This document shows positions 7,103 through 29,010 of a stretch of DNA of 64,000 nt, in pieces (within the stretch, counting starts at the first letter, position 1; each line of letters begins with the position of its first letter). The notes beneath the pieces were generated by a model. The model was given only the letters and a program-made list of their open reading frames with translations. It made no database searches and had not been told where the DNA came from. The translations under genes and the position numbers were made by a program. The DNA lies in IMG/VR virus record IMGVR_UViG_3300037264_008423, positions 62,001 through 126,000 of that record; one strand, written 5' to 3'.

Positions 7103-7588
7103 ATGAACAGCAAAATTGTAAGCATAGCCTTGTATGGCAAGCGTGGCGGCGCTGCTCTTGTGGACCGGGATATTTTTGAAAAAATTGGCCATTTTCATTG
7201 GCGTCTGAATAAAGGCGGATACGTGGTTCGCTCGGTGCTTATCGACGGAAAGCACACGATCAAATATCTCCACCACGAGGTTATGCAGCCGGGGGATGGC
7301 GCGGAAGTTGATCACCGTAATGGCTTGAGATCGGATAATACACGTAAAAATTTGCGTCTGGCTACTCGCGCTCAAAATAACGGCAATACCGAAAAGCACG
7401 GCATCCGGTCTTCCCGGTTTAAAGGAGTCAGTTGGGCAAAACACCGCAGCAAATGGAGCGCGCAGATTCATAACCATAACCGTAAGCAGCATTTGGGCTT
7501 GTTTGAAGACGAGGCGGACGCCGCACGAGCTTACGATGCCGCTGCTATTGAGTATTTTGGAGATTTTGCAAAAACTAATAACCCTTAG
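7103..7588 (+). CDS. HNH endonuclease with C-terminal AP2 domain
   Basis: YLHHEVM...VDHRNGLRSDNTRKNLR (HNH_3-like) followed by FKGVSWAKHRSKWSAQI...HLGLFEDEADAARAYDAAA (AP2). Confidence 0.9.
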   Translation: MNSKIVSIALYGKRGGAALVDRDIFEKIGHFHWRLNKGGYVVRSVLIDGKHTIKYLHHEVMQPGDGAEVDHRNGLRSDNTRKNLRLATRAQNNGNTEKHGIRSSRFKGVSWAKHRSKWSAQIHNHNRKQHLGLFEDEADAARAYDAAAIEYFGDFAKTNNP

Positions 7589-8309: not shown

Positions 8310-8885
8310 ATGAGAAAAATACAGCACATCAGCGGTAAAGTTCAGGTTCAAATTGTGCAGGACTATAAGGAGAAACTCCCCAATGGCCTGCACCGCTACA
8401 CCTTAAAGGAGATCGCTCGCAAATACGAGGTTAGCCTGAGCACCGTGAACAACCTGGCGCGCACGGCGCGCTGCCAGGGACGCCCCCACGGGGGTCGCGA
8501 GCAGACCGTCCCCACGCCGCGCATCCTCAAGATTCTGCGGGATAGCACCGAGCCAGGGATCAGCCTGGACGAGGTTGGCCGTCGTAATCCGCGCTGCCTG
8601 GTGCGGCGCGGTAAGTCTGTGGCGGTGCCGCTCACCAAGCAGCGGGTGTCGGAGATCATCCGCACGTGGTCCAGGAAGCTGGATATGACTAAGATTCATG
8701 GCCGAGGTTTCAAACCGGGCGACCAGATCGAGTGGGCCGACCAGATTTACACGGTCCTGCGCTACGACAGCTCCCGGCAGGGCGCGGTGCGCGAGGGGAC
8801 TACGGACCAGGGCCAGGTCATCGATCCATTCCTGTGGGTGCATGGCGGCTGCCGTAGCAAGCGCCTGGATTACGAGGGTAGCTAG
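8310..8885 (+). CDS. Putative HTH DNA-binding protein
   Basis: YTLKEIARKYEVSLSTVNNL helix-turn-helix, plus a second sigma-r4-like SLDEVGR...LTKQRVSEII segment. Confidence 0.6.
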   Translation: MRKIQHISGKVQVQIVQDYKEKLPNGLHRYTLKEIARKYEVSLSTVNNLARTARCQGRPHGGREQTVPTPRILKILRDSTEPGISLDEVGRRNPRCLVRRGKSVAVPLTKQRVSEIIRTWSRKLDMTKIHGRGFKPGDQIEWADQIYTVLRYDSSRQGAVREGTTDQGQVIDPFLWVHGGCRSKRLDYEGS

Positions 8886-10036: not shown

Positions 10037-10221
10037 ACCCTGTCGGAGCGTTGTTTTGCGCCGAAACCAGACCCCGTGAGTCGGCATTTGCACTCTGCCG
10101 TGGCGTCTGGAGCGAGGCGGAAAGTGAAGTGGTTCGGGTCCAAAGTTTGTGCAGGCTATGCGAGTATGGACACCGGATACGTCCGCTGGTTCGGTTTACC
10201 CGCGCCCTGCCCCGACAGGGT
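10037..10221 (+). ncRNA. Putative structured RNA containing a delocalised CRISPR-repeat copy
   Basis: Bracketed by a 10-bp inverted repeat ACCCTGTCGG (10037-10046) / CCGACAGGGT (10212-10221), with internal stems. 10142-10164 AAAGTTTGTGCAGGCTATGCGAG matches the 3' 23 nt of the array repeat at 21/23. Confidence 0.6.
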
Positions 10222-10235
10222 TTTGTATTTACGGT

Positions 10236-13200
10236 GTGCAGTTGGAGAATTTAGACGATGACGTGAGCGTGAAGGATCTGGCGGACTATCCGCGCTACCT
10301 GATCCGCAACCCTCAAGGCGACTACTGGTCCAATGACTGGGGATGGGTGGACTACGCCAGCGCCGACATTTTCAGTCACCTGGAAAAAGAGCGGTTCGAC
10401 CTGCCTTCGGAGGGTCAATGGGTTCCCCTGGCCGAATCCCGTCCGGTTATTGGTTTCCCCGGCAATGACTTGAAGGCGCTCCTGGGAGAGGATTTTGTAA
10501 ACAAAGCGGACGCCTTCCTTCAGGAGCAGGGTATGCTGTGCCTCCTGGAGTGGCACCCGCAGGGCCGTCGGGTGGGCCAGGCCCAGGCGGCGGGTCAGGC
10601 GCTCACGGCGCGCTTGAGCCTGAACAGCGCCGACAGCCAGCTCTTGCGCCGCGAGGGGAGCCTGAAGCTTTTAGATCAGTTGCGGGAGAGCGTGCGCGGG
10701 TTTCTGCCCAAGAGCGCCGAGAGCCGGGTCCGGGTGGTTCCCCAGCGTCCCCAGTATGACCGCTGGAACGACCGCTGGAACCTGGAGCTGGTGGTCTTGG
10801 AGGCGTCCGAGGACGACTTGGAGTCCAAAGAGGTCTATTTTGACGATGATCCACCTGAATTTGCCGCTCCCCAGGGCCTTAGCCCGGAGGGAGAGCGCGC
10901 CCGGCAGATCATTGTCCAGGTGCTTCGGCGCAATGGCGATCTGGATTCACGCGGTCAAAAGCATGTTTTCTATACCCCCGAACAATGGGCGCTAAAGGCG
11001 GATGAGCATGTTAAGGACGGGGTATTAGTGGTCGTTCACGATGGCGGCAGCCACGCTCCTTACTTTCACATGTCCTACGCGGCTGAATTAATGCTGAGCC
11101 GGATGGACCTGGCCCTGCGCCGGGAGGGATTTCAAATTTACCCCTACGCCCCTCATTACTCGGTGATTGCTCCGGTGGAACATGACGAGGCTAACCAGTG
11201 GTTTGTGCGCCAGATCGAGGATTGGTTCCAGCGAAACCCGGACCCGGCTGCGGTGCCCGGCGAGGAGCCGCCGCCCCCGGCAGCCACAGGGAATGTCCCG
11301 GAGAGCTTGGAGGACGATGACGATGTAAACTGGAAGGACCTGCAACTGCCGCTGGACAAAGAGGCGGCGATCCGGCACGTGTTTCGGCAGGCGGGGCTGA
11401 AGATCACGTCGATTCAGGAAGTGCCTGAAGACCAGGACTGGGGTGAGCTGGGGCACGCCCAGCGCATCATCGTCACCCGTGTTCCGCCCAATCCCGATCA
11501 GCCCTGGACTACGGACATAAACGCGTGGGAGGCAGTCGATGAGTTTTGTTTACGAATCAAGTCGGCCCTCTATGAGATCCTGGACACGGATGACATCGAG
11601 TGGCTGAGAAACTGGGGCCTGGAGGACCAAGCGCCGGAGGGCCGCCATTGGTATATCTGGTGGTATATCGGCGACCCGGACATCAAGGAAGAGCGGGAAA
11701 TGAATGAATCGGACGAGGACGACTTCGACGTGAAGGACTACTCGGACGACATCCCGCAATCGGATGACTTCCAGGCTTACCTGCTTCAGCGCGGATTTCG
11801 CAAGCTTTCGGGTCAGATGGGAGACTACTTCAAGAAGCTGCCTGCTGCTTACGCGCGGGTTCGGGTTTATCAGTATCCCAACTATGTCAGCTACCTGCTG
11901 GGCCTGAAGGAGGGCAACCACTGGTTTAAGTTGAGCGAGATGACCAACGCCTACCGGGTCCTGTCGGTTTTGCAGCAGCGAGGGCTGTTCGACGTGCGGG
12001 AGGGCCTGGACGAGGAGTTTGGAGCCGATGACGACCCGGAGCTGTATCTCACGCCCACGCCGAACCTTCAGGAGCGGTGGAATCAGTTCGAGGCGGCCTG
12101 GCGCAGTCAGTGGGCGCTCATACAGCGCGGGGTTAATTTCGGCCAGCGCACCGCTTACCTGGAGGGGATCATGCCCTCGCACCTGCGATGGCGCGCCGCG
12201 TTCCAAGAGGTTCAACGGCTCGTTTACGAGCACTTGGGGGGCGGACGCATCGCCGATTTCAAGTATCACCGGGATGGCTACGTCCTGTTTCACATCTACG
12301 ACCTGGGCGGCGTGGTGGAGAGCGAGGCGGAGAGTGAGGCGGATGATGTGGACTGGAAGGAGATCTCTTCCTATCCCAAGCCCAGCGCGCGGGAGGTCCG
12401 GGAAGCCATGAAGCGCCGGGGGATCGTCTATAATCGCCTGGTGCGCGGCAAGGATGTGGTGACCTTCCTGGGCTGGTTTAAGCGGGGTCAACTCGAACTG
12501 GATGTGCTGGCCCTGTTGCGGGAAGCGGCGGCGGAAGCGGGTCTTGACCAGGAGCACGTCCAGTTTTTCTATATGCCCGGCGCGGGTGAGGTCGCGATCA
12601 TCGCGGCGCGGACGGGCCTGTTGGAAAGCGAGGAGGATGAGGACTTTGACACTAGAACCTTGAAGGATGTGTCTGAAACTGGCAAGTTAGTGCCGGAAAT
12701 TGTGGCGGCGATGATCAAAAATGGGGTCATCCATATGATGGTTCGCAGGCCGTGGCAGCCCCCGCCCCACGACTTGCTGCTTTTTATGGGCTTGTGGCAG
12801 GCAGGCAAGACGGACCAGGAGGCCGCCCAGGTTTGCGCGGCGATCCTAAGAGATTTGCGCATTCCCATTACTTCCAGCTTGGACGACTGGTTCAACTATA
12901 TGCCCGGCTCCGGCGATTTCGACCTGGCGCTGCCTGCTTACCTGGTCTTGGACTGGGAGAGGTATGTGGTGGAATCCCAGGCTGGCCTGGTCCAAAAGAT
13001 CATCGAGGCCCAAGGCACGGTTCTAAACGTGCAAGTGGCAGACCGAGAGGAACTTGTCACGATTCAAGGCGAATGGAAGCCCGGAGCCACGGTTCAAGCT
13101 CTTGCCGAGGCCATTAGCGTGGATGCCAATCGGATTCAGTATGACGCCAAAAATGGCGAATTTACGGTGCTGGCAACCCGGCAAGCCCTTGTGCAAGAGG

Positions 13201-14765
13201 ATCAGGCGGATGGCAAGGCCAGCGACACCAAACGGGTCGCCATTGTGGCGGTGTTTCGGCAGAAGCAGGACGATCCCGCCTACGAGTGCCTGGTCTGCAA
13301 GCGCGAGGGGCCGCCAGCGGAGGGCGAATGGGTGATCCCAGGTGGTCATGCCGAGGAGGGCGAGGAGATCAAAGTCGCCGCGCGGCGTGAGTTGCAGGAA
13401 GAGGCGCACGTGGACCTGGGCGACCTGACCTTTGTTAAGACCATGCCCAATGAGACGGGGGACTTGGAAGTCCATGTCTTTGGAGCGATCTTGCCGGAAG
13501 GGGAGAGGGCCAAGGCCGGGGATGACGCGGAAAAGGTGAAATGGCTGCCCCTGGACGATCTGCCCAAGCTGAGCCTGGATAATGACAATTTGATCCGGGA
13601 AGTGGCCGAGGCGATGGAACTGCAACGGCTGCCCTCGGTGGACGAGAGCCTGCCCCCGCGCCTGGCCGACCAGATTCGGTCAAAGATAGCGGCCCTGAAG
13701 CCGCGCCGCGCGAGCCGCGCCGGTATGAGCTTCGAGGTTCAACAGCCAGAGGGATTTGTGGATCGGCTCATCGAGGGGATTGAGCGGGAAGCGGAGCAGT
13801 TGCAAGCCGACGCTCAGCCCGAACTGCGTCTCATGGACCTGATCGAGGATGCCTACAGCCAGACGGGCACCTATTTGTTTCCAGACGACCAGCAGGACGT
13901 GGAGCGATTGGCGCGCGTGCTGGTTCCTTTATTCAAAAAACCAGCCGGACGGCGGATCAAGGAGAGCGCGGACGCTCCCCCGCGCTATGGCACCGTTACC
14001 GACGAGGTAGTGCCTGCCCTGGAACAAGCTCTGGTGGAGATCTTTGGCCAGCGTTATGACTGGCTGGTGCCCCACGTGATCCAGCACATGGACCCGGAGA
14101 TCTCTTTGATCGCGATGGAGGGTGATCGCGTGATCGGTTTCTACATCCTGGGCCGCCGTTCGATCTTGGACGGCGTTAAGAGCGAGCACCTGAAGCCCAC
14201 TGAGGATTTGAAGCCCTATCGGCAGCGCCAGGGCATTGAGGGGGTAGCCCTGGGCATTGTGCCGGATCGCCGGGGCACGGGCCTGGGCAGCCGGTTCAAA
14301 GACTATCCACAAACCCTGGGCGCGGATTATATGTGGGGTCTGCAAATGCATGATCTGGATAACCTGAGCCACTGGCTCAAGCGCCGCCGCATTGTGGCGC
14401 GCAACCCGGAGATGGTCGCGACCCTCCAGGACTTTAAACCGGGGGCGGTAGCGGAGGCCAGCGAAGAGGATTTCGAGGCCAAGGACTTGGAAGATGATTT
14501 GCTGAATGACGAGCATTTTCAAAAGTTTGCCCAGGAGCACGGCCTACTCTACCACCCTGGCGCTAAAATGGTGCGCGACGTGCTGGATAATGTTTATGGT
14601 TCCATTTGGTTTAAGACCGGCCCCTATTTAAATCGGGAGGCCACGGTCCGCCAGTGGACCCAGGTGTTTTCCGACTATTTCAAGATCGATCCCGCCCGGA
14701 TGAAAGTGGCCTATTACCCGCCCAGTGGCGACATTATGGTCATGGTCACGAATCTGGTTCTGTAG
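10236..14765 (+). CDS. Modular polyprotein-like protein with 7 acidic tag linkers; cargo includes Nudix and GNAT domains
   Basis: Likely start GTG 10236 (TATTTA-N4-GTG). Nudix box GGHAEEGEEIKVAARRELQEEAHV at about 13341. GNAT motif A VALGIVPDRRGTGLG at about 14245. Recurring E(S/A)-acidic-KD tags. Confidence 0.75.
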   Translation: MQLENLDDDVSVKDLADYPRYLIRNPQGDYWSNDWGWVDYASADIFSHLEKERFDLPSEGQWVPLAESRPVIGFPGNDLKALLGEDFVNKADAFLQEQGMLCLLEWHPQGRRVGQAQAAGQALTARLSLNSADSQLLRREGSLKLLDQLRESVRGFLPKSAESRVRVVPQRPQYDRWNDRWNLELVVLEASEDDLESKEVYFDDDPPEFAAPQGLSPEGERARQIIVQVLRRNGDLDSRGQKHVFYTPEQWALKADEHVKDGVLVVVHDGGSHAPYFHMSYAAELMLSRMDLALRREGFQIYPYAPHYSVIAPVEHDEANQWFVRQIEDWFQRNPDPAAVPGEEPPPPAATGNVPESLEDDDDVNWKDLQLPLDKEAAIRHVFRQAGLKITSIQEVPEDQDWGELGHAQRIIVTRVPPNPDQPWTTDINAWEAVDEFCLRIKSALYEILDTDDIEWLRNWGLEDQAPEGRHWYIWWYIGDPDIKEEREMNESDEDDFDVKDYSDDIPQSDDFQAYLLQRGFRKLSGQMGDYFKKLPAAYARVRVYQYPNYVSYLLGLKEGNHWFKLSEMTNAYRVLSVLQQRGLFDVREGLDEEFGADDDPELYLTPTPNLQERWNQFEAAWRSQWALIQRGVNFGQRTAYLEGIMPSHLRWRAAFQEVQRLVYEHLGGGRIADFKYHRDGYVLFHIYDLGGVVESEAESEADDVDWKEISSYPKPSAREVREAMKRRGIVYNRLVRGKDVVTFLGWFKRGQLELDVLALLREAAAEAGLDQEHVQFFYMPGAGEVAIIAARTGLLESEEDEDFDTRTLKDVSETGKLVPEIVAAMIKNGVIHMMVRRPWQPPPHDLLLFMGLWQAGKTDQEAAQVCAAILRDLRIPITSSLDDWFNYMPGSGDFDLALPAYLVLDWERYVVESQAGLVQKIIEAQGTVLNVQVADREELVTIQGEWKPGATVQALAEAISVDANRIQYDAKNGEFTVLATRQALVQEDQADGKASDTKRVAIVAVFRQKQDDPAYECLVCKREGPPAEGEWVIPGGHAEEGEEIKVAARRELQEEAHVDLGDLTFVKTMPNETGDLEVHVFGAILPEGERAKAGDDAEKVKWLPLDDLPKLSLDNDNLIREVAEAMELQRLPSVDESLPPRLADQIRSKIAALKPRRASRAGMSFEVQQPEGFVDRLIEGIEREAEQLQADAQPELRLMDLIEDAYSQTGTYLFPDDQQDVERLARVLVPLFKKPAGRRIKESADAPPRYGTVTDEVVPALEQALVEIFGQRYDWLVPHVIQHMDPEISLIAMEGDRVIGFYILGRRSILDGVKSEHLKPTEDLKPYRQRQGIEGVALGIVPDRRGTGLGSRFKDYPQTLGADYMWGLQMHDLDNLSHWLKRRRIVARNPEMVATLQDFKPGAVAEASEEDFEAKDLEDDLLNDEHFQKFAQEHGLLYHPGAKMVRDVLDNVYGSIWFKTGPYLNREATVRQWTQVFSDYFKIDPARMKVAYYPPSGDIMVMVTNLVL

Positions 14766-14770
14766 CCCGT

Positions 14771-14959
14771 ATGGCACACTATACGGACGCGGACTACGCG
14801 GATTTTTTAAAGGCCCTGAACGAGGCTGCCATCGAGGTTAGCGACTGGGAGGCTAAGTTCATCGAGTCCAACCTGGAGACCGAGATGTTCTCACCCCGGC
14901 AGGTGGTGAGTCTCAATGAGCTGATTGAGCGGTATGGCAAGCGCATTGGCTGGCTATGA
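14771..14959 (+). CDS. Hypothetical protein
   Basis: 62 aa from ATG 14771. Confidence 0.55.
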   Translation: MAHYTDADYADFLKALNEAAIEVSDWEAKFIESNLETEMFSPRQVVSLNELIERYGKRIGWL

Positions 14960-15234
14960 GGAAGGTGATTACAGGTTATCTTTACCGGGGCCAGCCCATC
15001 TACGAGGAGTGGAGCGATGATAAGCTGGAATTAAAGTGGTTCAGCCGCGACATCATGCCCCTGAAGGAGGGCTGGAAGTTTAAAGATTGGCACTTTCTGC
15101 ACGCGATCCGCTTTGAGCCTCACGAAAAAGAAGGTATGTCCGGCGACCCTGAAAAGACTTCCAGGGTCGTCGCGCGGGTGATGGAGGGCCGGGAGCGAGT
15201 TTGTCAGCTTACCGGAGTGGAAAAAGTGGTATAG
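14956..15234 (+). CDS. Hypothetical protein
   Basis: 92-aa ORF with an ATGA overlap. Confidence 0.55.
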   Translation: MRKVITGYLYRGQPIYEEWSDDKLELKWFSRDIMPLKEGWKFKDWHFLHAIRFEPHEKEGMSGDPEKTSRVVARVMEGRERVCQLTGVEKVV

Positions 15235-15293
15235 TAAAAAAAGTTTACTTTTTTGATTGCACTCTTTTCAGTCTTCGCTTAATCTCTTTTAAG

Positions 15294-16985
15294 ATGAATA
15301 CGGAAAGACAAGATCAGCCCTCTGTGAATCCCGCTCCGGCCAGCGTAGATGAAGCGCAAAGAGCCAAGCAGGAAGCCATCGCCCAGGCCAAAGCCAAAGC
15401 CCAGCGGAAGCAGGAGGAGAAAGAGGCAAAAGGTTTGCCCCGCTCGATTAAGCTTAAGCCCAAGCGCGTGCTGGAGTGGGAATGGGGTCCCTACCTGTAT
15501 AAGCAGCTTCGGGTGTGGGAGGCGACGACTTTTATGCGCCGCGAAATCTACCGTGGCCTTTTCAACGCGGACACTCCTCCCTATAAGACGGGGCACGACC
15601 GGTTGCAGCCTCACACCCAGGTATTCGGAGCCATCACCACTTACGCGAATCGGCTTTTAAAAGATTTTTCCGCTAAAGTCCAAATCCTGCCTGCCTACAT
15701 TACGGGGTTCATGACCAAAATTTATGCCGAAGACTATGCCGCTCGACGGGAACACATTTTGGTGACGGGCCTGGACTTTATTCCGATAGGCGGCTTTCCC
15801 GCGCAAGTGGAGATTCGGGCGGAGAACGTGGAGATTTTAGTTAACCCCGAAGATCCTCGTGGTTTTCTGATCCGGGTGCCTTTTTACCGCCACGATGTGC
15901 CGACCAAAAACGGCGGAACGAAATCAGAGGTCGTTTACGTGACCTACGTGATTGATCCCAAGGGGGACTGGCAGACGGGCAGCAGCCTTAAAAAACAGCA
16001 CCGCGCCAGCGCGTTTGACGGCACGCCTTTGCTGGAAAGACTGCGGACCGGCGAGCGCACGATGGGATCGTTGAAAATTTTGGGCAAGTTCCGATACGCT
16101 TCCTCCAGCGAGGCGAGGCTATTGCGGGAACAGGAGGACCGGGTGAGGGAAGCCAAAAAGAAAAACGATCCCTCGGTTGTAAAAATACCCTGGGAAATCA
16201 CTGATCCTTTCACGGTGGATGGCGTATTGCTGCCGCCCTATAAGCGCGACAAGTATAAGCGGCGCGTGGTTTACGAGCCGGTCCTGCAACTGTCTTACTA
16301 TCTGCCGCCGCTGCCCCCGGAGCGGGAACGGCGCGGCTTGGCCTTCTGCTACACCGATCCAGATCGGTTTATGGCGATCAAGATCCATCAAAATTTTGAG
16401 CGGGACCTGGACGACGAGCTGGTCCGTAGATCCTTGTTTATGTCGCAGAAGATCTATGAGCGCCACAAGCTGCTGGACCCCCACAACAAGATGTCGGTCA
16501 TGTCCCCGGAGCAAATCCGTGAGCTAGTTGAGCTTTCGGATCGGCGCTACACCGGTATTCGCCGAATGACGCGCTTGTTTGGGACGGGAGGCAACTCTAA
16601 AATGAAGGGCGTGAGCCAGAAAATCAAGGGGATTACCCTCCATTTTGACCATTCGGTAGTGAAAGCTTTCATGAACTTGGTCATCGAGCGCAACGCCGCC
16701 GAGTTTTACTATTTTGACGCGGACCGGCGCTACATGGAGCACTATCACTGGTTCATTCTCAGGGACTATTTTGCGCAGGCGTGCAAGGTGCTCCAGATCA
16801 AGTTCCATTACCTGGAGGGCTGGCAATTTAGCGATTGCCAGGCGGAGGAGAAAAAAGGCGGTAACTGGGACTTTAATAAGATTTACTTGCGGATACGCGG
16901 CGAAAAATCGAGGCGGACTCGTGCCGAGCACGAAAAATACAGTCAGGAACAGTATGAAAGGAGCTTAGCAGATGAAAAACCTTAG
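15294..16985 (+). CDS. TnpB/Cas12-like (type V-like) CRISPR effector, RuvC apparently inactivated
   Basis: 563 aa from ATG 15294, about 0.85 kb from the array. Segment order parallels TnpB/Cas12: N-terminal RSIKLKP strand; last WED strand VLQLSYYLP; RuvC-I-like strand RRGLAFCYTD (GID position reads AFC); basic bridge helix; FDHSVVKAFMNLVIERNAAEFYYFD (RuvC-II region); YHWFILRDYFAQACKVLQIKFHYLEG. No CxxC finger or RuvC-III. Confidence 0.7.
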   Translation: MNTERQDQPSVNPAPASVDEAQRAKQEAIAQAKAKAQRKQEEKEAKGLPRSIKLKPKRVLEWEWGPYLYKQLRVWEATTFMRREIYRGLFNADTPPYKTGHDRLQPHTQVFGAITTYANRLLKDFSAKVQILPAYITGFMTKIYAEDYAARREHILVTGLDFIPIGGFPAQVEIRAENVEILVNPEDPRGFLIRVPFYRHDVPTKNGGTKSEVVYVTYVIDPKGDWQTGSSLKKQHRASAFDGTPLLERLRTGERTMGSLKILGKFRYASSSEARLLREQEDRVREAKKKNDPSVVKIPWEITDPFTVDGVLLPPYKRDKYKRRVVYEPVLQLSYYLPPLPPERERRGLAFCYTDPDRFMAIKIHQNFERDLDDELVRRSLFMSQKIYERHKLLDPHNKMSVMSPEQIRELVELSDRRYTGIRRMTRLFGTGGNSKMKGVSQKIKGITLHFDHSVVKAFMNLVIERNAAEFYYFDADRRYMEHYHWFILRDYFAQACKVLQIKFHYLEGWQFSDCQAEEKKGGNWDFNKIYLRIRGEKSRRTRAEHEKYSQEQYERSLADEKP

Positions 16986-17655
16986 CAACAACAGCCAAGC
17001 GGTGGACCAGAACCTCGACCATCAGCTTGAGGCGCTATTCAAGAGCCAGTCGGCAAGCACGGAGAAAATTGCCTGGGTGATGATGGAAATGGTGGAGCGC
17101 CTGGATGGGGGATGGGTCCCGCGCAATGTCGCGGCGGTTACGGACCATATCCAGACCAAATATCGGCTCAGCAAGTTCATGATTGAAGGTTATTTTCGCG
17201 TGGCGAGAAAACTAACCTTGGTGGGGGTTTTTAGCGAGAAAAACGCCGCCGCCAGGGTGGTGCAGTTCTTCAGTATTGACGCCCAGCAGCAGGCGTTGGG
17301 CGGTATCCCTGTTTACCAGGGACCCGGTAAGAAAGCCAAGATCGAGAAGCTGCACCAGATTGAGGACCGGGAGGTCCCGATGATTTTTGACGAGCGCCTG
17401 CGCAAAATCCGTTCTGTGGAGGAGCAGGCGGCTTACACGGCGCTCGCCATGCGCCAGGTTGGACCGGTCAGCAAGTGCGCTGTGCGGTTTTGGCCTAATG
17501 GTGTGTATAAGCTGATTAAGAAAGCGAGCCGCGTGGATCAAGCTTACTGCTCTGACGCGCTGAAGAGACGGGGAGTGGAGTCCGTTCCTGATTACGCGCT
17601 AAGGGCGCAGATTGACCGGGACATCGAAAAAGAATTTGGCTCTGAAAAGGGCTGA
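16972..17655 (+). CDS. Hypothetical protein translationally coupled to the effector
   Basis: 227 aa, overlaps the effector stop by 14 bp, and is the last gene before the array. Confidence 0.75.
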   Translation: MKNLSNNSQAVDQNLDHQLEALFKSQSASTEKIAWVMMEMVERLDGGWVPRNVAAVTDHIQTKYRLSKFMIEGYFRVARKLTLVGVFSEKNAAARVVQFFSIDAQQQALGGIPVYQGPGKKAKIEKLHQIEDREVPMIFDERLRKIRSVEEQAAYTALAMRQVGPVSKCAVRFWPNGVYKLIKKASRVDQAYCSDALKRRGVESVPDYALRAQIDRDIEKEFGSEKG

Positions 17656-17657
17656 AA

Positions 17658-17834
17658 AATACACCGTATCGCAGCGGTGTTTAGCCAGGGGATCTGCGCC
17701 TGCGCCGATTCCTTGGGGAAGTCCTCCACACTGCGAGCGCCGTCGATTTTCGGCTTAACTTTAAGTTGGCCGTGCGGCGGCGCTCGCAAACTTGCTCTTT
17801 GACAATTGATGCTGAGTGACTTGCGGGGTGCGGG
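17658..17834 (+). ncRNA. Putative tracrRNA/scoutRNA-like structured leader region
   Basis: Hairpins 17661-17680, 17685-17716 and 17732-17788 (14-bp outer stem). CCTCCACA at 17723-17730 is complementary to repeat nt 20-27. Confidence 0.5.
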
Positions 17835-18405
17835 GTAGCACTGCTTAAAAGCTTGTGGAGGCTATGCGAGTCCACCTTTACTATATAGCTGACGGGTGAA
17901 AAGCGGGTATCACCGCTCAAAAGCTTGTGGAGGCTATGCGAGGCTGAGCTGGATAGGCACTCGGAAGCGGTCGTGCAAGTAGCACCGTTAAAAGCTTGTG
18001 GAGGCTATGCGAGCGCAGCTACCCCTAAGACCTTTTCCACCGGCGTTCTGTATCACTGCTTAAAAGCTTGTGGAGGCTATGCGAGATGACCATTGCGCCC
18101 ATGATGTGGCGCTGCGACTGGTATCACCGCTTAAAAGTCTGTGGAGGGCTATGCGAGAAGGTGGCTTACGGATACGCTGCTTAAAAGCCTGTGGAGGGCT
18201 GTGCGAGATGAGTGTCCCGAAAGCATTGAAGTATCACTGCTTAAAGGTTTGTGGAGGGCTATGCGAGAATAAAGTTTAGGAACGACGTGAAATTACTGAG
18301 GTATCACTGCTTTAAAGCTTGTGGAGGCTATGCGAGGATGATCTGGTCGTAACCATACGGCGCTTTGTAGTATCACTGCTTAAAAGCCTGTGGAGACTAT
18401 GCGAG
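17835..18405 (+). CRISPR. CRISPR array, 9 repeats / 8 spacers, consensus GTATCACTGCTTAAAAGCTTGTGGAGGCTATGCGAG (36 bp)
   Basis: Repeats start at 17835, 17907, 17979, 18050, 18121, ~18171, 18231, 18301 and 18370. Spacers are 36, 36, 36, 35, ~13, 23, 33 and 33 nt. Orientation inferred, not proven. Confidence 0.95.
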
Positions 18406-18430: not shown

Positions 18431-18453
18431 CGCAATCTCCACAAGCTTTTAAG
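18431..18453. repeat. Anti-repeat (inverted copy of the CRISPR repeat core)
   Basis: CTCCACAAGCTTTTAAG (18437-18453) is the exact reverse complement of repeat nt 10-26. Pairing extends with bulges to CGCA at 18431. Confidence 0.85.
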
Positions 18454-18476
18454 TGTTAAAAATAGTTCTACCGGAC

Positions 18477-18893
18477 ATGGAACAGCTCATTGCCCATTTA
18501 GTCGGAGATTACGTGCTACAGAGCCAGTGGATGGCCAATAACAAAGACCGGGAGAACCTGCCCTGCCTGCTGCACTGCCTGCTCTACACGGCCTGCTTCC
18601 TGGCGCTTACCGGGTCCTGGAAGGCCCTGCTGGTGATCGGCGTGACCCACTTCCTGATCGACCGCTTCCGGCTGGTCCGTTACCTGATATGGGCTAAAAA
18701 CTGGCTGACGCCCCTGGGCTACTACCCGTGGAGCGCCTGCCAGAGCACCGGCTACCTGGATGTGGAACAGGACCCCATCGGGCTTAAGGAACCGTGGGAC
18801 CAGCGGCCCATCTGGCTGCGCGTGTGGCTCTTGATTATCACTGACAACACCCTGCACCTGGCTCTCAACTACGCGGCCCTCAAATATTTGTGA
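18477..18893 (+). CDS. DUF3307-family membrane protein
   Basis: LIAHLVGDYVLQSQWMA...K, LLHCLLY, THFLIDRF and DNTLH motifs. Confidence 0.8.
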   Translation: MEQLIAHLVGDYVLQSQWMANNKDRENLPCLLHCLLYTACFLALTGSWKALLVIGVTHFLIDRFRLVRYLIWAKNWLTPLGYYPWSACQSTGYLDVEQDPIGLKEPWDQRPIWLRVWLLIITDNTLHLALNYAALKYL

Positions 18894-25572: not shown

Positions 25573-28500
25573 GTGACGCGCGCCGAGCAAGCCATACGTA
25601 GTTTGGTTGAGGACGAGGACTTCGAGCTGAAGGACCTGGTGTCGGACTATGACGGGAATCCCATCCTGAAGCTGCCCCGTGGCCGGGAAGAGGTATTGGT
25701 CGAGTTAGGGGGTGAACTATACACAGGCACCGCCCAAACCTTATGGGACTGGCTGCACGATCCGTATATCTGGCGTTTTGTGATATGGGTGGACGGTCAC
25801 CTGGTTACCGGAATGCGAGGCAATGTCACTGACATCAACGATGCTGGTCTTTCCATCAAGCTCCTCGATCAGCAGGGGAACTACCTGCGCAAGACGGTTC
25901 AGAAATCTGAACCGGTTATCGGTCTTAATTCCCGCACGGAGAGGGGGCAGCGTCCGCCTGATGCGGTCGCGCTGGAGTTTCTCCCAGCGGGTTTTAGACT
26001 GAGCGAGTCCGAGGAAGAGGACTTTGACACCAAGGATCTGGTTGGAGAAGCGGTGTTGATGCCGGATACGGCGCAGGCAGCCGAGCTAACGGCGGAAGCT
26101 TTGGACGGGATCACGAAGGCCATCGAGGCGGGACCTAAGCTGGACTGGACTAAAAAGGAGTCAAAGGGTTTGTGGCTCAAGGAGTGGCCAGGACTACTGC
26201 ATAAGTTTAGCACGGACAGGGTAAAGCTGCGCTATTCGCCAGCGGGAACGTTTCATGCGGCTTATCAGTATGGTGGTTTGATTGTTATCTTTGTGCCGCC
26301 TTTGACCGAGATGGGGCCGGGCTACCGGCTGGACTTAACTCGGCGCACCTTGGAAAAACTTGTCCATCATGAGCTGGTGCATCACGCGCAATGGCAGCGC
26401 CATCAAGGCAAAAACAAGGGAACAATCAGCCGTAAAGGAGTTGCTCAAGACCCGGCTGCTTATTTTAACACAAAATCGGAGCTTATGGCCAGGGCGCACG
26501 ATTATGTCTTGGGTCTGGCGGGGCGCGTGGGTGGCTACAGCAACGGGAAGATCCTTTCCCGCTCGGAGGTCATCTACCGCATTCGGCAGCCCGGAGACGA
26601 GCGTGGGAGCCTTAACTTGAAGTATTTGACCCCCAAATCCAGACGACGTTTTTTCAAGTATGCTTACCAGTATGCTCAGCAGTTACCAGAGTCGGTCGAG
26701 GACGATTTCGAGACCAAGGACCTGGAGACCCAGGACCCGACCCGCCTGCGTATGCCGGTTGCTTTTGCCAACGTGCCGGAGGGGTTTGAGTTTAAAAAGG
26801 ACGATGGACAGGCCGTGCGCAAGCAGGGCACGGGCTACACGGTGGGCGGCGAGTTTCATAACCTGGGCAATCCAAAATACTGGTGCTACCCCGTGGACTG
26901 GGATCTGCCGACGATCAGTTCCTTTGGCCGGAAATGGTATCGCACGCGCCAACCGTTGCCCCCGCTGTCCAGGGCGCTGGAGTCAGTCGAGGACGATTTC
27001 GAGATCAAAGACCTGGAGCTGTCCGAGGAGGAATTGGATCTGCTGGCGGCTACGGAGGTCGCCGACCGGCTGAATCGGGCCGGGTTCAAGTTCACCATCG
27101 ATAAAAATCTGCACTTCATGCTGGATGACCGGATGCACGGTCGGGAAATCCGGTTGGGGCCAACGGTTCAGTTTATCTTGGAGCCGCGCAAGACCAATGC
27201 TGACCGGGGTGAGTCCTGGGTTAAAATGTGGACGCGCATTCAGTATATTCCCGATTACGGCGAATTTTATACTGTCTGGAAGAATCACTTGCAGCAGGTG
27301 GTGGGGGCAGAGAACCCCATTTGGATCTTTGGCAACAATGCCTATGAAATTACGATTCCCGTAGGCCCGTCCACGCAACAGAAGATGGTGGAGCGCCTGG
27401 CTGAGAAGATCCAGGAGTCCCAGCCTGCGGACCGGGAGCGGCTTGAAAAGGTTTACGATAAAATCTACAAGTTGGCGGAAGCGCACGGCCAGGAGTCCGA
27501 GGAGGATGATTTCGAGACTAAGGACCTGGAAACCAGCTCGGATGAAAGCCTGATCGTAGGCCACGCGACCGAGGGTCAGAGTCCCCATGATTTGGCGCTG
27601 CGCGTGAGCATGTATGGCTGGCAAAACCCGGTGTTGTCCGAGCCTGGCCCGGACGATCCCAGTTGGGAAGTGCGCTTTAATTATCCGCGCGGCGCGATCC
27701 CGGACAACGATCCCGCGCAAGTGGACCAGGCGGCCTGGCACGTGATCGAGCTGGCGGCGGCCATGTCCTTTCGGGGCCACATTCGGGTGACACGTGTCCA
27801 GGATGCCGACTATGACTTTGTTTTCCGCGTCGAGCCGCTGGTCCAGGAAAGCGAGGACGACGATGATGTGGACATGAAGGCGCTCTTCGACGATCCGCCC
27901 TCCGAGTGGCGCTACGTGGGAACGGTCCAGGTGGACCAGGACCAGGGTATCGAGCGCTTTGTATTTCGCAGACACGGCATAATTGATGAGACTTTGGAGA
28001 TGCATCTGCATGAGCAGGCCCCAGGGCGGTGGATCGTCAATTTTTACGTTCAGGGCGTGGGATTCCTGAGCCGCACGGAAATTCATGTCAACGGCTTGAC
28101 TCAGGCGTCGCACATCGCCCGGCAGCAGGCGACCGACTTTTTTACGGAAAACGGCTATCTGACTCCGATCACGGAGAGCCAGGAGCGGGAGACGCGCCGA
28201 TACAAGGTCACGGCGGACCCTGAGCACCTGGATCAGATCGAGCAGCTTTTCTGGTGGGTGAACAGCACGCATTCGGGCCACAGTGGCAGCGCCAAGATCT
28301 ACGTGGATGGCGACGGCGCGGCGCGGGTGGGGATCGAGAAAGAGGAGGGCGAGCTAAAGCGACCGGAGGAAGAGGTCCATTCCCGGTGCGACGGCGAGGC
28401 CGAGTTCTCGGTGTGCCTGGAGGATGAGGAGGACGACTTCGAGGTTAAAGACCTGGTGCCCGACCCGGCTTATATTCAGTGGGACCTGGTGGGGACCGCG

Positions 28501-29010
28501 CGTCATCCACAGCGGGTCACTCGTTACTATGAGCACGTCTCTGGCAATACGATGGCGCGGTTTAAGCTGTTCAAGGAACACATCAGTGACTACACGATCC
28601 TTTACACGCTGCCGCACCGTAACGTTTTAGGCGAGGATCGGTTCCAGGCTGATTCTTTTGAAGAGGCCGAGCAGATCGCCAAGAATAAGGCGTCGGAGTT
28701 CTTTTTGCACTACTGGGCGAATAAGGGCATACCCTTCGAGTCTAAAGCGGAGAGTCCGCCTGCCGTCAAAGCTTTGGCGGAATCCGATGACGGCCAGCTC
28801 CGGGTGGAGTTTGACGCCGGTCCCTGGCTGCAAGCCGCGACCGTGGACCAGGTGAAGGCGGCGCTGGAGAGCGCGGATGCCGTGGCCCTGGACCAGCGGA
28901 ACCATGCCGATCTGGACCGGTTTTTCGGCCAGGTGAGCGGGGGGTTTAAAGTTTACATTGATCCGCAAGAAATTGCCCATGCTCGCCCCGATGTCGTCAT
29001 CCCGGCGTAG
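25573..29010 (+). CDS. Modular polyprotein-like protein with 7 acidic tags; includes an HExxH zincin-like domain
   Basis: 1145 aa. HELVH at about 26368. Tags such as ESVEDDFETKDL, ESVEDDFEIKDL and ESEEDDFETKDL. Confidence 0.75.
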   Translation: MTRAEQAIRSLVEDEDFELKDLVSDYDGNPILKLPRGREEVLVELGGELYTGTAQTLWDWLHDPYIWRFVIWVDGHLVTGMRGNVTDINDAGLSIKLLDQQGNYLRKTVQKSEPVIGLNSRTERGQRPPDAVALEFLPAGFRLSESEEEDFDTKDLVGEAVLMPDTAQAAELTAEALDGITKAIEAGPKLDWTKKESKGLWLKEWPGLLHKFSTDRVKLRYSPAGTFHAAYQYGGLIVIFVPPLTEMGPGYRLDLTRRTLEKLVHHELVHHAQWQRHQGKNKGTISRKGVAQDPAAYFNTKSELMARAHDYVLGLAGRVGGYSNGKILSRSEVIYRIRQPGDERGSLNLKYLTPKSRRRFFKYAYQYAQQLPESVEDDFETKDLETQDPTRLRMPVAFANVPEGFEFKKDDGQAVRKQGTGYTVGGEFHNLGNPKYWCYPVDWDLPTISSFGRKWYRTRQPLPPLSRALESVEDDFEIKDLELSEEELDLLAATEVADRLNRAGFKFTIDKNLHFMLDDRMHGREIRLGPTVQFILEPRKTNADRGESWVKMWTRIQYIPDYGEFYTVWKNHLQQVVGAENPIWIFGNNAYEITIPVGPSTQQKMVERLAEKIQESQPADRERLEKVYDKIYKLAEAHGQESEEDDFETKDLETSSDESLIVGHATEGQSPHDLALRVSMYGWQNPVLSEPGPDDPSWEVRFNYPRGAIPDNDPAQVDQAAWHVIELAAAMSFRGHIRVTRVQDADYDFVFRVEPLVQESEDDDDVDMKALFDDPPSEWRYVGTVQVDQDQGIERFVFRRHGIIDETLEMHLHEQAPGRWIVNFYVQGVGFLSRTEIHVNGLTQASHIARQQATDFFTENGYLTPITESQERETRRYKVTADPEHLDQIEQLFWWVNSTHSGHSGSAKIYVDGDGAARVGIEKEEGELKRPEEEVHSRCDGEAEFSVCLEDEEDDFEVKDLVPDPAYIQWDLVGTARHPQRVTRYYEHVSGNTMARFKLFKEHISDYTILYTLPHRNVLGEDRFQADSFEEAEQIAKNKASEFFLHYWANKGIPFESKAESPPAVKALAESDDGQLRVEFDAGPWLQAATVDQVKAALESADAVALDQRNHADLDRFFGQVSGGFKVYIDPQEIAHARPDVVIPA

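Follow-up and report, generated by a model that had tools for sequence, protein, structure and literature searches.

A candidate accessory protein encoded between a compact TnpB/Cas12-like gene and a CRISPR-like array in a rare phage module

The 64,000-nucleotide (nt) stretch of phage DNA analyzed here (the window; bases 62001–126000 of the 238,436-bp IMG/VR record IMGVR_UViG_3300037264_008423) carries, just ahead of a CRISPR-like array, a gene for a basic protein of 227 amino acids (aa) that we call the partner. The partner is very probably the second protein, and a specialized one, of an RNA-guided system not described before. With moderate confidence, we read it as an accessory protein dedicated to a type V-like CRISPR module that is rare and carried by phages, in which it would bind the effector–guide ribonucleoprotein and work with it as a subunit or adaptor. 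What the module displays directly is conserved gene order, coupling of its two genes, their exclusive co-occurrence and parallel divergence, and, for the partner, basic charge and a confident fold. Along the plus strand of the window, it comprises the following features:

15243..15252, plus strand: putative promoter motif of the phage, GTTTACTTTT, some 40 nt ahead of the effector gene
15294..16985, plus strand: effector-like gene; its open reading frame (ORF) is open from 15201 and gives 563 aa when read from the ATG at 15294
16959..16963, plus strand: Shine-Dalgarno AGGAG of the partner gene, as read from the sequence; within the effector coding region, 8 nt ahead of the partner ATG
16972..17655, plus strand: partner gene, 227 aa, basic; helical N-terminal domain confident (residues 10–160), C-terminal tail low-confidence
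17661..17790, plus strand: conserved structured leader RNA, resembling trans-activating CRISPR RNA (tracrRNA) or scoutRNA; kept in all 7 lineages
17661–17680, 17715–17720 and 17723–17729: within the leader RNA, the 5′ hairpin, GGGGAA and the anti-repeat CCTCCAC
17734–17744 / 17776–17786: the two arms of the leader RNA's outer stem, with a variable hairpin inside
17799..17804, plus strand: TTGACA box inside the conserved TGTTCTTTGAC motif, between leader hairpin and array; kept in 6/7 lineages
17835..18405, plus strand: CRISPR-like array, 9 repeats of 35–37 nt, all ending TGCGAG
18437..18453, plus strand: 17-nt stretch 31 nt past the last repeat, an inverted repeat core with 100% complementarity; can pair with any repeat

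A first-pass annotation, made from the letters of this DNA alone, had described a gene coupled to a dead effector by a 14-nt overlap with the effector stop, and the only gene before the array. Both particulars are correct: the partner ATG (16972) sits 14 nt inside the upstream ORF, whose end is 16985, and no further sizeable plus-strand ORF lies in the 179-nt gap between partner and array. Word-based searches of 5.8 billion proteins with the partner and the upstream protein returned the query proteins alone, and searches of IMG/VR viral contigs and GenBank phages returned nothing for either. An exhaustive phmmer search for the partner (1.84 billion representatives) gave five matches, among them the genuine relatives P0004, P0005, P0006 and P0008; a profile search adds P0011, and screening of loci adds one in L016. 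The remaining phmmer match, P0007 (314 aa, E 4e-8), was judged spurious: its gene contains introns, sits on a eukaryotic chromosome of 16 Mb and is matched in five short stretches. The partner family thus stands at seven lineages, with 22–30% identity to the window protein. Seven orthologues of 219–238 aa, along with a predicted local distance difference test (pLDDT) score above 90 for residues 10–160, mark the partner as a real gene and not a chance ORF.

Wherever DNA is available, the same order recurs in all seven lineages: effector-like gene, partner, leader RNA, array. In every other lineage the partner directly follows a 450–473-aa gene (or a fragment of one), with a 4-nt overlap or a start within 10 nt of the stop, and the upstream proteins of these relatives are clear homologues of the window's effector-like protein. 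For instance, on the short contig L002 the 77-residue upstream fragment still carries the effector family's C-terminal motif. Approached from the effector side, a family profile scan of JGI metagenomes recovered the same lineages only, with the partner following wherever the contig continues, while one genome each of 185,579 prokaryotic species yielded no effector at all. The module is rare and confined to phage contigs. The first-pass proposal of a coupled partner gene is thereby borne out across the homologues' neighborhoods; the outcome it had set against itself was the occurrence of homologues with no link to Cas12-like genes, and neither phmmer nor profile searches found a partner homologue away from an effector-like gene.

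Over six lineages, effector and partner show pairwise identities that are similar in size and correlate closely (r = 0.96), which implies that they have been inherited together without shuffling, although by itself the correlation is no proof of binding. Prediction of the effector–partner complex, with seven-row alignments for both, gave an ipSAE of 0.00 in two runs, a value that weighs neither for nor against binding. Should the partner be an unrelated phage gene merely beside the effector, the lack of a demonstrated interaction would be as expected; we give this reading hardly any credence in the face of adjacency and coupling in seven lineages at 22–30% identity, with no homologue elsewhere in two libraries of billions of proteins.

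The upstream protein (P0002; its database record, P0003, begins at M32 and is 563 aa long) matches no Pfam, PHROG or PDB sequence, whether alone or as an alignment. Its Cas12-likeness derives from ESM Atlas structure and feature matches only. Rows 1–4 of the structure matches are TnpB/Cas12f clusters, with template modeling (TM) scores of 0.39–0.44 by query and 0.34–0.53 by target over 311–338 aligned residues, the Atlas model itself being of low confidence (pLDDT 0.46); the feature matches are to TnpB-related families. The "dead Cas12" of the first-pass annotation is therefore not confirmed as stated, and the protein is better described as a probable member of the TnpB/Cas12 superfamily without a zinc finger. 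In the seven-sequence alignment of the effector family (A4), T354-D355 and E470 are invariant, the former in a β-strand context that looks like RuvC-I. Neither CxxC pairs nor an invariant third acidic residue was found there, and hence neither an intact D-E-D triad nor a zinc-finger/TNB domain. Only about 50 residues separate the putative RuvC-II, assigned like the other RuvC motifs by eye, from the C-terminus, and the Cas12f TNB (PF07282) and OrfB_IS605 profiles have no match in the phage genome. The effector has likely lost its zinc-finger/RuvC-III part. We propose that it needs the partner because it is truncated in this way, having no zinc-finger/TNB domain and no conserved RuvC-III.

As modeled, the partner is a basic, mostly helical protein with a confident, novel-looking fold. 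All seven orthologues are basic, with isoelectric points of 9.4–10.0. AlphaFold with the seven-row alignment placed residues 10–160 at pLDDT >90, in seven helices, a small β-hairpin and two more helices, while the last 65 residues remain low; this model supersedes one from the single sequence, in which residues 9–80 alone were confident. The N-terminus had been called helical at first pass, and the peptide quoted for it does lie in two confident AlphaFold helices, H50–64 and H68–78. The motif noted at the same time, IFDERLRKIRSVEEQ, is likewise present, and contains three family-invariant residues (D140, R147 and Q152). An analogy drawn there to TniQ/TnsC or sigma factors is not supported. The partner has no Pfam match to TniQ or AAA+ TnsC, none of the seven partners matches sigma70 regions 2/4, and no sigma factor is among the top 50 fold matches; even with E values up to 10 allowed, no Pfam family is matched consistently by any of the seven. 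Alone and as an alignment, the partner (P0001) has no Pfam, PHROG or PDB sequence match, and fold searches (Foldseek on PDB, BFVD and VIA, and the Atlas fold search) returned no significant match.

The only PDB matches to span most of the partner's confident domain are the DNA-binding domains of KorB, ParB and Spo0J (101–107 residues aligned, model residues 12–148), with values that fall below the tool's stated noise level. ESM Atlas look-alikes also include a ParB_N cluster and a plasmid-partition cluster. At the sequence level, the partner family fails to match HTH_ParB, ParBc or KorB profiles, and the HTH_ParB profile PF17762 found nothing in the phage genome at E up to 1, yet matched in all 14 control genomes. 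With fold values under noise, no Pfam match and an empty HTH_ParB search, a ParB/KorB-like helix-turn-helix (HTH) DNA-binding domain is a lead, not a classification. Among other look-alikes, the best in BFVD is S5MBG8, an uncharacterized 203-aa protein of Sinorhizobium phage phiM12 (KF381361, L022; Foldseek E 0.011, probability 0.99); the partner family profile matches nothing in the phiM12 genome, leaving S5MBG8 as a lead with no sequence-level relation. The partner also resembles two Atlas clusters made up of 205-aa proteins, most of which come from Pseudomonadota (TM 0.49/0.54).

An HTH-like N-terminal domain with weak resemblance to ParB/KorB DNA-binding domains would also suit a locus-specific repressor or activator, acting on its own operon, the array promoter or leader DNA from outside the RNA-guided complex, in the manner of Aca proteins or the HTH protein of dCas12f loci. 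The latter is a precedent, and conserved DNA boxes do occur upstream of the operon and ahead of the array. Upstream of the operon, the relevant motif is GTTTAC[ATG]TTT, present in 21 copies in the 238-kb genome where 0.5 are expected; it frequently follows TTGAC at a distance of 17 nt and stands directly ahead of a gene. Orthologous operons bear TTGACG-N17-TACnTT in the same position, with promoter-like boxes upstream of the effector gene in L003, L006, L011 and L016, and the motif appears as a 22-nt identity between L011 and the record holding the window (G000:140893–140914). GTTTAC[ATG]TTT probably represents the consensus promoter sequence in this group of phages. Ahead of the array, the TTGACA box might supply the −35 element for transcription of the array; a promoter scan found no full sigma-70 site there. 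Since what the boxes match is a promoter motif general to these phages (those 21 genome copies), they are not specific operators, and the leader's only strong inverted repeat has compensatory changes, typical of RNA rather than of an operator. Regulators, moreover, tend to be exchanged among loci, in contrast to the exclusive co-occurrence and parallel divergence seen here, and translational coupling to the effector fits stoichiometric production. We consider a regulator outside the complex unlikely.

The leader RNA begins about 5–30 nt past the partner stop codon in every lineage, and its layout is shared by all seven: a small 5′ hairpin, a GGGGAA linker, a 6–10-nt anti-repeat, an 11-bp outer stem of invariant sequence around a variable inner hairpin, and a T-rich tail. 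The RNAalifold prediction contains 20 pairs, and compensatory changes occur in 7. The named structure has 92.7% of cells paired, compared with 83.6% in shuffled alignments (0/500 reach it) and 35–44% after sliding of the partner column. Across 6 distinct repeat types, the anti-repeat changes in step with the part of the repeat immediately 5′ of its closing TGCG[AG]G: in the window, CCTCCAC faces GTGGAGG, and further complementary pairs occur in L002, L003, L006/L016, L011 and L019. A duplex-energy matrix of cognate against non-cognate pairs is not cleanly diagonal, because GC-rich strands pair promiscuously, and so the covariation argument rests on the in-register pairs. Rfam has no match to the leader. 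When its motif was scanned for more widely, the 3 viral and more than 120 bacterial loci returned encoded no relative of either protein, and were set aside as chance matches in GC-rich DNA. Window 17661–17790 is best read as a putatively expressed tracrRNA/scoutRNA-like gene.

Such an RNA raises the prospect that the partner serves guide-RNA biogenesis or assembly, binding the 11-bp outer stem or the repeat:anti-repeat duplex, aiding pre-CRISPR RNA (pre-crRNA) processing or loading, and staying off the target. The outer stem stays invariant between lineages whose proteins share only about 25% identity, which implies that a protein recognizes it by its sequence; the RNA's start, so close behind the partner stop in every lineage, and the partner's strongly basic character point the same way. 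We nonetheless hold this role to be rather improbable: fold and Pfam searches detected no RNase or known RNA-binding fold in the partner, and the effector itself could read the stem.

In all seven lineages a same-strand array of repeats with unique spacers lies right behind the partner gene. Spacers of the window array are 36, 36, 36, 35, 13, 23, 33 and 33 nt long. Repeats vary between lineages, yet all terminate in TGCG[AG]G. The L006 lineage has long arrays, of more than 25 units, and in these the conserved part is the 3′ half of the repeat, which fits a guide with its handle preceding the spacer. In L003:8790–8842 and L006:8815–8870, a truncated repeat (the 3′ half) and a spacer-length segment stand after the leader hairpin and before the first full repeat, so that the first unit resembles a natural single guide: scaffold, then guide. 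The near-identical strains L006 and L008 have distal spacers in common and differ at the leader-proximal end, with five unique spacers versus one, which is the pattern of polarized acquisition. Their arrays (L006:8870–11020 vs L008:8870–11000; also L009 and L017) have gained or lost internal units, and their distal repeats have degenerate 5′ halves. These arrays point to active spacer turnover with no cas1 nearby.

Could the partner itself be a spacer-acquisition factor, standing in for Cas1–Cas2? The 238-kb genome gave zero matches to cas1 (PF01867), cas2 not having been searched for. Phage-encoded CRISPR arrays commonly depend on the host's adaptation genes, and no integrase- or nuclease-like fold or motif appeared in the partner in fold and Pfam searches; we regard an acquisition role as very improbable. 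Protospacers were sought in the phage's own genome, in GenBank phages, in IMG/VR (three spacers) and by comparing all arrays with all loci, and none was found; the sole cross match in the last comparison is the shared promoter motif, not a protospacer. Positions 13–31 of spacer 4 match the phage's own genome at 18/19 nt (window 27584–27602, within the 1145-aa ORF 25573–29010), with E 0.005 per query over nine queries.

The inverted copy of the repeat core behind the array occurs in this phage alone and is absent from other lineages; possible readings are a terminator-like hairpin and an inverted repeat that has decayed. Two further inverted repeats, also in this phage only and possibly due to chance, touch the protein genes. 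One, GAGCGCC...GGCGCTC, lies within the partner ORF (window 17392–17445), where its loop holds the repeat core GTGGAGG; the other is a 14-nt perfect inverted repeat between the effector 3′ coding region and the partner ORF (16768–16781 / 17395–17408).

Repeat-like units also stand apart from the array, upstream of the module and on the array's strand, in the company of the following features:

10129..10164, plus strand: solitary repeat-like unit ending TGCGAG; differs from the repeat at 2 positions within its 3′ 23 nt; lies right at the beginning of the 1538-aa NUDIX ORF
10149–14765: 1538-aa ORF with one NUDIX domain (residues 1029–1149), directly upstream of the module
7103–7588 and 8310–8885: HNH_3 + AP2 homing-endonuclease-like gene and a 191-aa Sigma70 region 4 protein

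A second solitary repeat, full length (30/36), lies 2.9 kb before the window (G000:59084–59119), about 30 nt ahead of the ATG of a 296-aa ORF. Orphan guides are one possible reading of these two repeats; binding sites for the effector on phage mRNAs are another. A small NUDIX gene is found in L011 too, two genes downstream of the module. The HNH_3 + AP2 gene and the Sigma70 region 4 gene lie 6–8 kb upstream of, and outside, the conserved module, and the Sigma70 region 4 match of the 191-aa protein (E 4e-5) is just under Pfam's cut-off. A search for TniQ, TnsC or transposase genes near the module by Pfam scan of flanking ORFs (ten between 5.0 and 24.9 kb, plus ORFs 10149–14765, 14956–15234 and 18453–18893) gave only HNH/AP2, Sigma70_r4, NUDIX and DUF3307, several 100–200-aa ORFs of the stretch being unscanned. 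CheckV puts the 238,436-bp record at 96% completeness, making it a jumbo phage, and the locus is present in one public sequencing run only, a sediment metagenome that is probably the source sample.

Returning to the partner as an accessory protein, a working model can be laid out along the order of the module: promoter, compact TnpB/Cas12-like protein, partner, tracrRNA-like RNA, array. Translational coupling would have the partner made in step with the effector. The partner, as a putative basic and mostly helical nucleic-acid-binding protein, would then act with the effector–guide ribonucleoprotein, either as its second subunit or as an adaptor giving DNA or RNA contacts or downstream action. 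Physical binding, nucleic-acid binding and the events at a target are parts of this model that we infer. A more specific version, which we offer as a tentative possibility, is an undescribed jumbo-phage class 2 subtype. Here, a minimal TnpB-like guide binder that has lost its zinc-finger/RuvC-III part would co-evolve with a novel-fold, ParB/KorB-like DNA-binding partner, and, with a scoutRNA-like tracrRNA and crRNAs, DNA would be bound and silenced, perhaps by spreading or as a roadblock, and not cut. Solitary repeats stand before two phage genes, which suggests that genes of the phage itself are also under the control of this machinery.

If both proteins act together, they would make up a naturally occurring class 2 system of two proteins, founded on a Cas12/TnpB-like scaffold that is among the smallest, with neither effector nor partner detectable by current profiles. 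In essence, such a system would show a truncated RNA-guided protein handing a function to a separate subunit, and would place a new accessory family beside the few known (TniQ/TnsC, sigma-E, Cas3 and TasParB). It would also be a second case, beside TasA–TasParB, of phage RNA-guided proteins tied to ParB-like proteins. The module is fully defined, from promoter and two genes to a tracrRNA-like RNA with mapped anti-repeat and repeat polarity, and has about 2.4 kb of genes, making it directly testable in E. coli.

Several known systems pair a non-cleaving Cas12 with an accessory partner: Cas12k with TniQ/TnsC in CRISPR-associated transposons, dCas12f with sigmaE, Cas12m with Cas3, and Cas12 with IscB and an HTH protein (PMC13472631, PMC10910872). 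The HTH protein of dCas12f–sigmaE loci is an autoregulator only. Like these multicomponent type V systems, the module has a compact, probably Cas12/TnpB-like protein without a canonical RuvC triad, an operonic second protein and adjoining predicted guide RNAs (PMC13472631, PMC10910872). In contrast to them, its partner matches none of those accessory families, its conserved part includes no transposase, sigma-factor or Cas3 genes, its effector has no sequence similarity to any Cas12/TnpB profile, and it is found on phage contigs only. A second point of reference is TIGR-Tas, in which nuclease-less phage TasA is sometimes operonized with a ParB-like gene (PMC12045711). The resemblance lies in an RNA-guided-type phage protein and a candidate ParB-like protein in one operon, with guide arrays adjoining (PMC12045711).

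CasPhi/Cas12j, Cas-lambda and Cas12r likewise set a single small type V-like protein beside an array in (jumbo) phage genomes with no cas1 or cas2 (the latter unsearched here). Those proteins are active nucleases without an obligate partner, and the effector described here has no sequence relation to them. The leader RNA, for its part, recalls the tracrRNA of types V-B/E/F/K and the scoutRNA of Cas12c/d: a short RNA beside the array, whose anti-repeat would pair with the repeat, followed by a stable hairpin. The scoutRNA anti-repeat is reportedly short (Harrington et al. 2020), as are the 6–10 nt here. What sets the predicted leader apart is its place in the 3′ untranslated region position of the partner gene, and an outer stem that is invariant across very divergent lineages. 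A literature search found no paper describing this module. Neither of its proteins matches any of the systems above. We class the module as rare and type V-like, and its partner as a new family of obligate accessory proteins.

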